DNA of 64,000 nt from IMG/VR virus record IMGVR_UViG_3300042473_001265, positions 248,001-312,000 of that record; one strand, given 5' to 3'. The notes beneath the pieces are model-generated. The model saw nothing but the letters and a program-made list of their open reading frames with translations. It had not been told where the DNA came from and ran no database searches. Positions 56,216 to 58,360 of the stretch are shown here, piece after piece. Each line of letters opens with the position of its first letter. The first letter of the stretch is position 1. Both the position numbers and the translations under genes were made by a program.

Positions 56216-57424
56216 ATGACCATCAGATCAACACCCACGCATTGCAGTTTTTGTGACAAGCACAAGGATCAAGTCGTCAAACTGATTGTGGGGCACAATG
56301 TAGGCATATGCAACGAGTGTGTTGATTTTTGTCACGGGCTACTGATAAAAGAACAGGCCAAAACAAAAAACGTCACAGAAGAATCAATTTTAGATCCACG
56401 AGCAATACACAAATATCTTGATCAGTATGTGATTGGTCAACCAACTGCTAAAATTGTGTTGAGTGTGGCTGTGGCCAATCATTACAAGCGCATCAGTGAT
56501 ACAGGTCTAGAACAAGAAATACAAAAAGCCAATATCTTAATAACAGGACCAACCGGCACAGGCAAAACACTGATGGCCCGTACTGTGGCCAAATATTTAG
56601 ATGTTCCTTTTGTCATTGCAGATGCAACCACATTGACCGAAGCAGGTTATGTGGGTGATGATGTTGACAGTTTGATCACACGGTTATATCATGCCAGTGG
56701 AAATGATGTGGAACGCACACAGCGCGGTATTATATTCCTAGACGAAGTAGACAAAATAGCCCGCAAAAGCGAAAGCGCCACGGTAACACGGGACATATCC
56801 GGCGAGGGTGTGCAGCAAGCACTGCTCAAACTGATCGAAGGTACCAAGTGCAAAGTGGCCCAGCAAAATAGTCGCAAGGTCTCAACAGGTGAAACAGTTG
56901 ACATCGACACTACCAACATCCTGTTTATCTGTGGTGGAGCTTTTGTTGGGCTAGACAAAGTTATCAAAACCCGCACACACGGAACTGCCATTGGATTTGG
57001 TGCAAAGTTAACAGTGCCAAACAACGCCACAACAGAAGCAATCACTCCAGACGATCTAGTACGCTACGGAATGATACCGGAGTTTGTGGGAAGATTTCCC
57101 AGCATTATACAACTGGACGAGCTGACCAAACCACAACTTATTACCATTCTTACCGAAGTAAAAAACAACCTGGTTGGTCAGTACAGATGGTTGTTTAACC
57201 AAGATGGGGTAGCATTGGACTTTGATACCGACAGTTTAGATCTAATTGCTGAACGCACAATGGTCACAAAAACTGGTGCTCGTGGACTGCATACAGAACT
57301 AGAGCGTGTGTTGTTGCCGCATATGTACAACTTGAAAGATTATCAGTCACGCAATGTGCTAAAAATTGCCATTGACAAAACACAAGTCACAACGCCTCTT
57401 AAATTAGAACAACAAAATTCTTAA
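56216..57424 (+). CDS. clpX: ATP-dependent Clp protease ATP-binding subunit ClpX
   Basis: 'CSFC...CNEC..FC', 'GPTGTGKT', 'GYVG', 'FLDEVDK', 'IGFG', 'GARGL'. Confidence 0.95.
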   Translation: MTIRSTPTHCSFCDKHKDQVVKLIVGHNVGICNECVDFCHGLLIKEQAKTKNVTEESILDPRAIHKYLDQYVIGQPTAKIVLSVAVANHYKRISDTGLEQEIQKANILITGPTGTGKTLMARTVAKYLDVPFVIADATTLTEAGYVGDDVDSLITRLYHASGNDVERTQRGIIFLDEVDKIARKSESATVTRDISGEGVQQALLKLIEGTKCKVAQQNSRKVSTGETVDIDTTNILFICGGAFVGLDKVIKTRTHGTAIGFGAKLTVPNNATTEAITPDDLVRYGMIPEFVGRFPSIIQLDELTKPQLITILTEVKNNLVGQYRWLFNQDGVALDFDTDSLDLIAERTMVTKTGARGLHTELERVLLPHMYNLKDYQSRNVLKIAIDKTQVTTPLKLEQQNS

Positions 57425-57429
57425 ATTTA

Positions 57430-57460
57430 TTGACAGATGTTGAGATATCTGTTATAAATA
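57430..57460 (+). promoter_or_regulatory. Overlapping sigma70-like (TTGACA-17-TATAAA) and late (TATAAATA) promoters
   Basis: TTGACA 57430-35, TATAAATA 57453-60. Confidence 0.7.
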
Positions 57461-57464
57461 ATCG

Positions 57465-57525
57465 TGTAGTGCCCATGGTGGGGCTACATTTTAAAAGTCA
57501 TCTTGCTTAATAAAGGAGAAAACAA
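57465..57525 (+). promoter_or_regulatory. ROSE-like RNA thermometer in the hsp20 5'UTR
   Basis: 5' hairpin TGTAG-TGCCC-ATGGT-GGGG-CTACA; 3' hairpin CTTGCTT-AATA-AAGGAG with a UUGCU motif pairing the SD. Confidence 0.65.
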
Positions 57526-57984
57526 ATGACAAAAACTCTCACCCTTCGCTCTTTCGACATTCCTGCAATTCACAAATTTGGCATCGGATTCGACAACATG
57601 TTTGATGATCTCATGCGTGTGAGTGCTCAACAATCTACCACAAATTATCCACCTTATGATATTGTACAAATCAACGAAGATGAGTACATGATTGCTGTGG
57701 CTGTGGCCGGATTTGGCGACGACAATCTTTCAGTGATCAAGGACAAAAAAGTTTTGGTCATTGAAGGTAAGCACAGCCGTGAAACTGTGGACAATGAAGA
57801 TTCTACTGCAAAATATCTGCACAAAGGCATCAGTGAAAGACATTTCCGCAGGGAATTTCAGTTGGCTGATCATGTGGAAATTGTCAATGCAAATCTTGAA
57901 CTGGGCATCTTGAGCATACACCTAAAGCGTGATATTCCTGAAGAAGCCAAGCCAAAGACCATTGCAATCAACTACAAAAAGTAA
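57526..57984 (+). CDS. hsp20: Small heat-shock protein (Hsp20/IbpA family)
   Basis: 'IGFDNMF', 'NYPPYDI', 'AVAGF', 'YLHKGISER.F.R.F.L', 'GILSI.L'. Confidence 0.95.
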   Translation: MTKTLTLRSFDIPAIHKFGIGFDNMFDDLMRVSAQQSTTNYPPYDIVQINEDEYMIAVAVAGFGDDNLSVIKDKKVLVIEGKHSRETVDNEDSTAKYLHKGISERHFRREFQLADHVEIVNANLELGILSIHLKRDIPEEAKPKTIAINYKK

Positions 57985-58045
57985 TATAATAATCATAAGT
58001 ACAGTGGCAGCACAGTGCTGCCACTACTACAACAAAGGACACACT

Positions 58046-58360
58046 ATGACATCACCAGATATCAATACATTAATCAAATCAAAAGTAGAACTGCGTGAAC
58101 CACCAATGTTTAAGATCATCTACTTGAACGACACCAAGACATCTGTAGATTTTGTAGTTGAAAGTTTAATCACACACTTTGAATACACAGCAGACACTGC
58201 TGTCGCCATCACTGAAGATATCCATAATTCTGGATCCGCAGTGGTAGCAGTATTGCCCTACGAAATTGCTGAACAAAAAGGCATCGAAGTCACTGTGGAT
58301 GCTCGCAATCATAATTTTCCATTGCAGATCAAGCTGGAACCTGAAACAGTTGTGCATTGA
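58046..58360 (+). CDS. clpS: ClpS N-degron adaptor-like protein
   Basis: 'PPMFKIIYLND..T..DFV', 'IHNSG.AVV...YEIAE', 'FPL'; AAGGA SD before ATG 58046. Confidence 0.9.
   Translation: MTSPDINTLIKSKVELREPPMFKIIYLNDTKTSVDFVVESLITHFEYTADTAVAITEDIHNSGSAVVAVLPYEIAEQKGIEVTVDARNHNFPLQIKLEPETVVH

Follow-up and report, generated by a model that had tools for sequence, protein, structure and literature searches.

The 61-nt leader of the ibpA-type gene of a large freshwater phage is probably (we put the chance at about 70%) a divergent two-hairpin ROSE-like translational control element, inherited from or co-ancestral with the ibpA thermometers of proteobacteria. By analogy with these thermometers, the leader most likely places translation of the phage IbpA under temperature control, and it possibly mediates self-repression by IbpA as well. 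ROSE-like thermometers are the commonest RNA thermometers of bacteria. We found no earlier description of a phage ROSE-like element in the literature, and our sequence comparisons suggest that phages are a new host class for this known kind of element, and one in which it is widespread. The source is a phage of about 340 kb, represented by a viral record of 340,172 bp with a completeness estimate of 98% and a large terminase gene; the window, i.e. the whole stretch of 64,000 nucleotides analysed here, corresponds to bases 248001-312000 of this record. Positions refer to the window unless given as genome positions.

The gene behind the leader (57526-57984, + strand) encodes an IbpA-type small heat-shock protein (sHsp) of 152 aa (Pfam HSP20, E = 1.7e-16; PHROG 432, Hsp20), which is 41% identical to Escherichia coli IbpA over its full length. 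Its 5' neighbour codes for a clpX-like AAA+ unfoldase (56216-57424, +; Pfam AAA_2 and ClpX zinc finger) and its 3' neighbour for a clpS adaptor (58046-58360, +; Pfam ClpS, E = 5.6e-21). With two clpP homologues located about 22-24 kb downstream (genome 327686-328213 and 329912-330457), close to a second ROSE-like leader described below, these flanking genes form a phage proteostasis set. Between the stop of the sHsp gene and the start of clpS there is a 12-bp GC-rich hairpin (ACAGTGGCAGCAC.GTGCTGCCACTGT, 58001-58027), with a TATAAT upstream of it at 57985-57990 and without a U-run on the + strand; it may be a stem at the 5' end of clpS transcripts, or serve in processing or stability. A protein homologue search with the phage sHsp returned phage relatives only and no pointer to a host. 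When one genome per prokaryote species was scanned, the closest cellular IbpA proteins were 42-45% identical and, because they are spread over alpha-, beta- and gamma-proteobacteria, neither the donor nor the host can be named from them.

The earlier note on this DNA had described the promoter as sigma70-like or late-like rather than sigma32-like, and the first part of this description holds. A consensus -35 hexamer, TTGACA (57430-57435, +), can be read directly and is followed by a TG-extended -10 element, TGTTATAAATA (57450-57460, +), with TATAAA at 57453-57458; TTGACA and the 17-nt spacer also occur in several relatives. The promoter scan did not report the TATAAA element, the last base of which is A, not T. 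The sigma-32 pattern of heat-shock regulons (CTTGAAA, 13-15 nt, CCCCATnT) is absent from the window promoter, which reads TTGACA-17-TATAAA, while the bacterial homologues do show CTTGAAA...CCCCAT. The late-like part of the description has to be dropped, as TATAAATA has only 5 copies in the genome compared to 479 copies of TTGACA, and we rejected the reading of TATAAATA as a T4-type late promoter for this genome. The TTGACA count (both strands) is about three times the expectation and suggests heavy use of sigma-70-type promoters. An inverted repeat, ACAGAT..ATCTGT (57433-57452), sits in the promoter spacer and bridges the -35 and the extended -10, and its ACAG..CTGT part is kept in relatives with TTGACA promoters; it could serve as an operator, or simply result from the two promoter elements.

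We infer that transcription starts about 7 nt past the -10, at about 57465 and hence at the foot of the first hairpin, which would give a leader of 61 nt up to the AUG at 57526. Among relatives, an ATAAATA block stands at a constant distance of 5 nt ahead of this hairpin and is near-invariant in our alignment of leaders (A1). In lake metatranscriptome contigs of relatives, the leader is present in RNA from the 3' arm of the first hairpin onward, and these contigs argue weakly against a start downstream of 57502.

ROSE-like elements contain a U(U/C)GCU motif that pairs imperfectly with the Shine-Dalgarno site (SD), leaving a bulged G, and consist of two to four hairpins (PMC3669281, PMC11342760, PMC11182007). 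The leader at 57465-57525 folds, as the earlier note had predicted for a 5'UTR of about 60 nt, into a stable 5' hairpin and a weak 3' hairpin (all elements on the + strand). Hairpin I (57465-57488) is a 5'-terminal stem-loop, UGUAGUGCCC AUG GUGGGGCUACA, with a minimum free energy (MFE) of -10.2 kcal/mol, one U.G pair and a bulged G57470. It is separated by a single-stranded, A/U-rich linker (57489-57496), variable in length and sequence in A1, from GUCAU (57497-57501), the 5' arm of an outer helix. In the MFE fold, GUCA (57497-57500) of this arm pairs with UGAC (57527-57530), a helix that also covers the last two bases of the AUG, and U57501 pairs with A57519. Hairpin II itself is formed by the anti-SD CUUGCUU (57502-57508), which includes the ROSE motif UUGCU, and by the SD AAGGAG (57513-57518) as its 3' arm. 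The MFE fold contains exactly the pairing proposed in the earlier note, with G57505 bulged: C57502-G57518, U57503-A57517, U57504.G57516, C57506-G57515, U57507-A57514 and U57508-A57513. The position of G57505 between U57504.G57516 and C57506-G57515 matches the crystal structure of a ROSE-like stem, in which a bulged G lies between a U.G wobble and a C-G pair (PMC11342760). The loop AAUA (57509-57512) varies among relatives (AUA, AAUA, AUAUA, AUUAUA and others) with the arms fixed, and the SD-AUG spacer AAAACAA (57519-57525) is invariant in the close clade and variable in wider clades. The leader thus combines all the sequence-level features by which the literature defines a ROSE-like element: it belongs to an sHsp gene, its anti-SD is of the U(U/C)GCU type and pairs imperfectly with the SD so that a G is bulged, and its 5' hairpin is stable; the anti-SD CUUGCUU has no four-U run and is not of the fourU type.

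Folding energy cannot tell this leader from shuffled sequence. For hairpin I we obtained z = -1.6, with 11 of 200 shuffles folding equally well, and for the whole leader z = -1.2 (27 of 200 shuffles); the 19-nt core of hairpin II has a predicted energy of -0.9 kcal/mol at 37 C and z = -0.3. As these single-sequence statistics are not significant, we dropped them as evidence, and the support for the element is comparative.

A search with the sHsp protein yielded 175 viral contigs; we retained 80, and the upstream regions of these represent 48 distinct leaders. Two wider clades were seeded from phage-type genes on MAG-binned contigs (L084 and L085). Across the resulting three phage clades, in which identity to the window protein falls to about 53-55%, U(U/C)GCU, a loop of 1-6 nt and (A)AGGAG are kept in 238 of 240 sHsp loci, UCGCU being the only variant. 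In the window, the motif is UUGCU (57503-57507), which pairs with AGGA(G) (57514-57518). Among 59 distinct sequences comprising leader and gene start, CUUGCUU is found in 58 (the exception being AUCGCUU) and AAGGAG in 55, while third codon positions of the first 42 codons in the same sequences have a mean pairwise identity of 75%. Insertions and deletions in hairpin II are confined to the loop. The two seed contigs, binned with a Haliscomenobacter MAG (L084) and a Pirellulales MAG (L085), have a leader of the phage type together with an sHsp gene of 53-55% identity to the window protein; they probably derive from phages and were placed in bacterial bins and, without checking, are not host evidence.

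Pairing in hairpin I is kept in 98.6% of cells across the 48 distinct leaders. Exchanges in A1 include CG/GC (30/17), AU/GC and CG/UA, with compensatory changes in 3 of 10 pairs, and in 9 sequences an extra A-U pair has been inserted on both sides of the stem. The outer helix is invariant in 48/48 sequences and so shows no covariation. For hairpin II, we saw no double compensatory changes in the window's own clade, which is too conserved to show them. In the wider clades the SD-AUG spacer and GUCAU are variable or absent, and the GUCA/UGAC helix is absent from the marine clade; since spacer and GUCAU vary or vanish there, the universal feature is the anti-SD/SD hairpin. A covariance model built from 47 close phage sHsp leaders only (R1) recovers 64 of 68 diverse phage loci, and the phage cassette stands behind differing upstream genes. 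This kind of leader is also present in cultured phages: a ROSE-like hsp20 leader was found in three of the four examined, namely Sinorhizobium phage Phosso, Pelagibacter phage HTVC115P and Methylophilales phage Melnitz-3, with the cores CUCUCGCU-AUUU-AGGAG, ACUCGCUU-AACGA-AAGGAG and AUCUUGCUU-AACU-AAGGAG. Cyanophage S-TIM5 and its relatives (L432-L435) have a compensated variant, in which CCAC-G-CU faces AGGUGG; when the S-TIM5 Hsp20 protein was used for a scan, no more than 7 loci were obtained.

The same core precedes the start codon directly in 75 of 78 bacterial ibpA loci, with sigma-32-like promoters upstream; examples are AUUGCUU-CAA-AGGAG, CUCGCUGAUUUCAGGAG and CUUGCUCUAUGGAGG. R1, despite its purely phage training set, finds matches directly upstream of several of these bacterial genes with E-values of 7e-4 to 0.06, and it scores 26.7 bits in Neptuniibacter (E = 7e-4), 24.1 bits in an alphaproteobacterial MAG and 21.9 bits in Buttiauxella. 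In the Buttiauxella and Enterobacter matches, the CCAUGGUGG region of the preceding hairpin is shared as well. Furthermore, base pairs of hairpin II do covary over this wider range of phages and bacteria. The last SD position has C-G in some sequences and A-U or U-A in others (18 vs 16 in bacteria; 19 vs 2 in the paralogous family, or 3 by the count in alignment A4); the loop-closing pair alternates between G-C, U-A and C-G; at ROSE position 2, U.G alternates with C-G; and S-TIM5-like cyanophages show an exchange of U-A and A-U. The phage leader is demonstrably related to the bacterial ibpA leaders.

The outcome of the Rfam search that the earlier note had recommended was mixed: the window copy gave no ROSE match at E <= 10, while ROSE_3 produced full-length matches to relatives and to the paralogous leader that were significant but sub-threshold. 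The Rfam gathering scores (43 bits for ROSE_3, 49.9 bits for freshwater-2) were reached nowhere in the window or in 20 related loci. ROSE_3 aligned end to end with the leader of one relative, L011 (23.0 bits, E = 0.0057), and with the Melnitz-3 hsp20 leader (34.1 bits, E = 2e-4). Both alignments place hairpin I on hairpin I (AUGCCG...CGGGU) and UUGCU on UcGCu, followed by AGGAG and AUGAC; indeed, the hairpin I core (A)UGCC-N...N-GGG(U) matches the consensus hairpin I of ROSE_3. ROSE_2 and ROSE gave no match in a 301-nt scan or in the genome, but the genome scan also missed a ROSE_3 site of 31 bits, so that its negative results carry little weight. The best Rfam match of the window copy, to freshwater-2, scores 22 bits and is confined to the ribosome-binding site. 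The window leader is therefore ROSE-like by motif and homology, and not an Rfam family member by score; the leaders of L011 and Melnitz-3 are likewise below the cut-off and ROSE-like in motif, architecture and detectable similarity.

Nearest-neighbour calculations for the hairpin II core gave -5.3, -3.2, -0.9 and about 0 kcal/mol at 4, 20, 37 and 42 C. At 37 C, the medians for phage hairpins are -0.6 to -1.4 kcal/mol and enterobacterial hairpins lie at -3.8 to -4.8 kcal/mol, so that the phage hairpins are predicted to be weaker by about 2-3 kcal/mol. It is plausible, albeit speculative, that the weaker stem fits a set-point in the range of lake water rather than one of 37-42 C. Modelled SD accessibility did not rise with temperature for the sHsp leader, which did not stand out from a background of 110 further translation starts in the same genome. 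Because the validated thermometer of E. coli ibpA, our control, fails in the same way, we rejected accessibility modelling as a method, and not the hypothesis. At 25 C and below, the model favours a competing fold in which GUCAU-C-UUG pairs with CAAAUGAC, plus CUU/GAG; this low-temperature fold is not kept in spacer-indel variants or in wider clades and is clade-specific at most. We likewise found no support for the UCGCU and UUGCU variants having been tuned to the same stability, the UCGCU stems being about 2.5-3 kcal/mol stronger.

The following mechanism would account for these observations. After transcription from the sigma-70-type promoter at about 57465, hairpin I would form a stable, non-melting 5' cap, which probably aids the folding of hairpin II and protects the mRNA. 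This role is modelled on the ibpA elements of Pseudomonas, which have 61-62 nt and two hairpins, a GC-rich hairpin I that stays closed and a hairpin II that melts, and in which disruption of hairpin I derepresses the element (PMC3669281). Hairpin II, with its U.G wobble, bulged G and mostly A-U pairs visible in sequence and structure, would be deliberately weak, and in the window's clade the GUCA/UGAC helix would add cover to the AUG. By homology, the ribosome-binding site would be occluded in the cold, and upon warming the stem would unzip and the phage holdase be translated. Since the phage protein retains residues with which E. coli IbpA binds its own leader, this structure may also be subject to self-repression that is lifted when proteins aggregate. 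The mechanism would be weak if host ribosomes rarely use SD pairing. A gene for bS21 was looked for, and none was found.

The strongest competitor to temperature as the main input is this self-repression itself. In such a scheme, the leader is mainly the operator of a phage IbpA-type aggregation sensor, with temperature secondary: sHsp oligomers, while free, would occupy the stem-loops and keep translation shut off until they are titrated away by aggregates, e.g. during massive phage protein synthesis. The IbpA proteins of E. coli, Cedecea and Vibrio do repress their own translation via a ROSE-type 5'UTR, an activity that needs R93, R97/K98 and Y34 (PMC10474464) and requires the stem-loops (bioRxiv 10.1101/2020.04.20.050740). 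The phage protein has Y41, R105 and R109 at the positions equivalent to Y34, R93 and R97 (alignment A2), and the sequence core of hairpin I is conserved beyond what pairing needs. In addition, a second leader in the same genome parallels the E. coli situation, where IbpA represses ibpB through the thermometer of ibpB (bioRxiv 10.1101/2020.04.20.050740). On the other hand, the equivalent of K98 is E110, though R108 adjoins, and in the cited papers self-repression adds to the thermometer and does not replace it. The two are compatible, and we give self-repression as the main function roughly one chance in three.

We consider it unlikely that the leader is a passenger acquired with the gene, i.e. 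a stabilising 5' hairpin and a strong ribosome-binding site without conditional control. The very weak hairpin II predicted at 37 C (-0.9 kcal/mol) would fit such a leader, as would the modelling without a temperature effect, a test that the validated E. coli control also fails, and the reuse of the AAGGAGAAAACAAA(A)UG context by the gene downstream of the freshwater-2 RNA of this genome. The validated elements of Pseudomonas and Providencia, however, have similarly short and weak stems (PMC3669281, PMC11342760), and a plain ribosome-binding site has no use for an anti-SD heptamer, which has nevertheless survived in 238 of 240 loci over about 45% protein divergence. Loop, linker and, in wider clades, spacer drift while the anti-SD stays, and the leader was retained where the promoter was replaced. 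Even less probable, to the point that we do not expect it to hold, is a leader that is ordinary apart from hairpin I acting as intrinsic terminator or attenuator of the upstream clpX. The window stem is indeed followed by AUUUUAAAA, but this U-run is unconserved, with relatives showing AUUACAAG, AAUUCAAA or ACAGUAUA. Hairpin I also lies downstream of the conserved promoter rather than between clpX and the promoter, the cassette is found behind different upstream genes, and a terminator scan did not report the hairpin; we rejected the terminator reading on the negative scan and on the sequences of the relatives.

Outside the window, the genome contains a second two-hairpin ROSE-like leader at 324450-324520 (+) (G000:C1, corresponding to L164:1949-2017), in front of a gene for a 93-aa protein. 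It consists of a promoter, TGTTATAATAAC, a hairpin, UAGGAUGCCGC..GGCGGGUCUUA, and then ACUCGCUUAAAUUAGGAG, and scores 31.1 bits with ROSE_3 (full-length, E = 6.9e-5) and 28.7 bits with R1. Of 80 related loci, 70 retain this leader, with strong covariation: 8 of 9 pairs of its hairpin I covary and hairpin II shows an exchange of C-G to U-A. The 93-aa protein has no Pfam match, and an atlas gave a weak lead to phasins only. A weaker R1 match of 13.7 bits is found at L169:8519-8583 (genome about 87719-87783, +), where CCUAU pairs with the AUAGG of an AUAGGAG SD in front of an AUG; the site is possibly another SD-occluding leader. Furthermore, the genome has a bona fide freshwater-2 RNA (RF02980) at 202588-202673 (+) (L420:1501-1586), which reaches 64.4 bits against the gathering score of 49.9. 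freshwater-2 is an orphan motif from freshwater metagenomes, and here it stands directly 5' of a 271-aa ORF rich in Ala, Gly and Thr and without a PHROG match.

It is tempting to propose, although we regard it as doubtful, that these phages run a small regulon of ROSE-like leaders. The IbpA-type holdase would bind its own leader and that of the 93-aa gene and so couple translation of both genes to temperature and to the load of unfolded protein in the infected cell, detached from the sigma-32 of the host and beside clpX, clpS and clpP. If this were true, the leader would be a virus-owned proteostasis sensor and not a leftover of gene capture.

At a more general level, leaders of this kind stand ahead of hsp20/ibpA genes on hundreds of viral contigs of freshwater and marine origin. 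This wide occurrence, and the swap of the host's heat-shock promoter for promoters usable by the phage while the leader was kept, speak for a need of phages to control an auxiliary chaperone gene conditionally and after transcription. These putative natural thermometers are perhaps tuned to cool water, and Melnitz, HTVC115P and Phosso offer cultured systems in which to study them. The orphan Rfam motif freshwater-2 is now tied to a large freshwater phage.

Among thermometers of phages, a count in 2024 comprised lambda cIII, the fourU element of SPbeta blyA and a fourU element of a Caudoviricetes sigma-70 gene, none of them ROSE-like (PMC11182007). Like the leader described here, these are encoded by phages, and temperature-dependent translation has been proposed or shown for them. 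None is on a chaperone gene, and they come from temperate phages, prophages and gut phages, in contrast to the large freshwater phage studied here. The freshwater-2 RNA (RF02980) has the AAGGAGAAAACAAA(A)UG ribosome-binding context in common with the sHsp leader and differs in its upstream hairpins.

The bacterial systems are closer. Classical ROSE of Bradyrhizobium and other alpha-proteobacteria (RF00435) likewise precedes an sHsp gene with the core CUUGCU...GGAGG (L103), but has four hairpins in about 100 nt. The leaders of enterobacterial ibpA and ibpB (ROSE_2, RF01832) belong to the same gene family, have a UCGCU/AGGAG core with a bulged G and, in Buttiauxella and Enterobacter, an upstream hairpin with the same CCAUGGUGG loop region, and are also targets of IbpA self-repression; they differ in having three hairpins and a length of about 100 nt, and their thermosensing stem is stronger, with -3.8 to -4.8 kcal/mol at 37 C. 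The nearest likeness in layout is the short ROSE-like element of Pseudomonas (ROSE_3, RF02523; Krajewski et al. 2013, PMC3669281), which likewise precedes an ibpA-type gene and places two hairpins in 61-62 nt; the core (A)UGCC...GGG(U) of its GC-rich 5' hairpin is common to both, as is a tetraloop-sized loop in hairpin II. Compared to this element, hairpin II of the phage is one pair shorter, rich in A-U and without flanking G-C clamps, the AUG is paired in the phage leader and free in Pseudomonas, and the phage-encoded leader stands behind a sigma-70-type promoter rather than a sigma-32 one.
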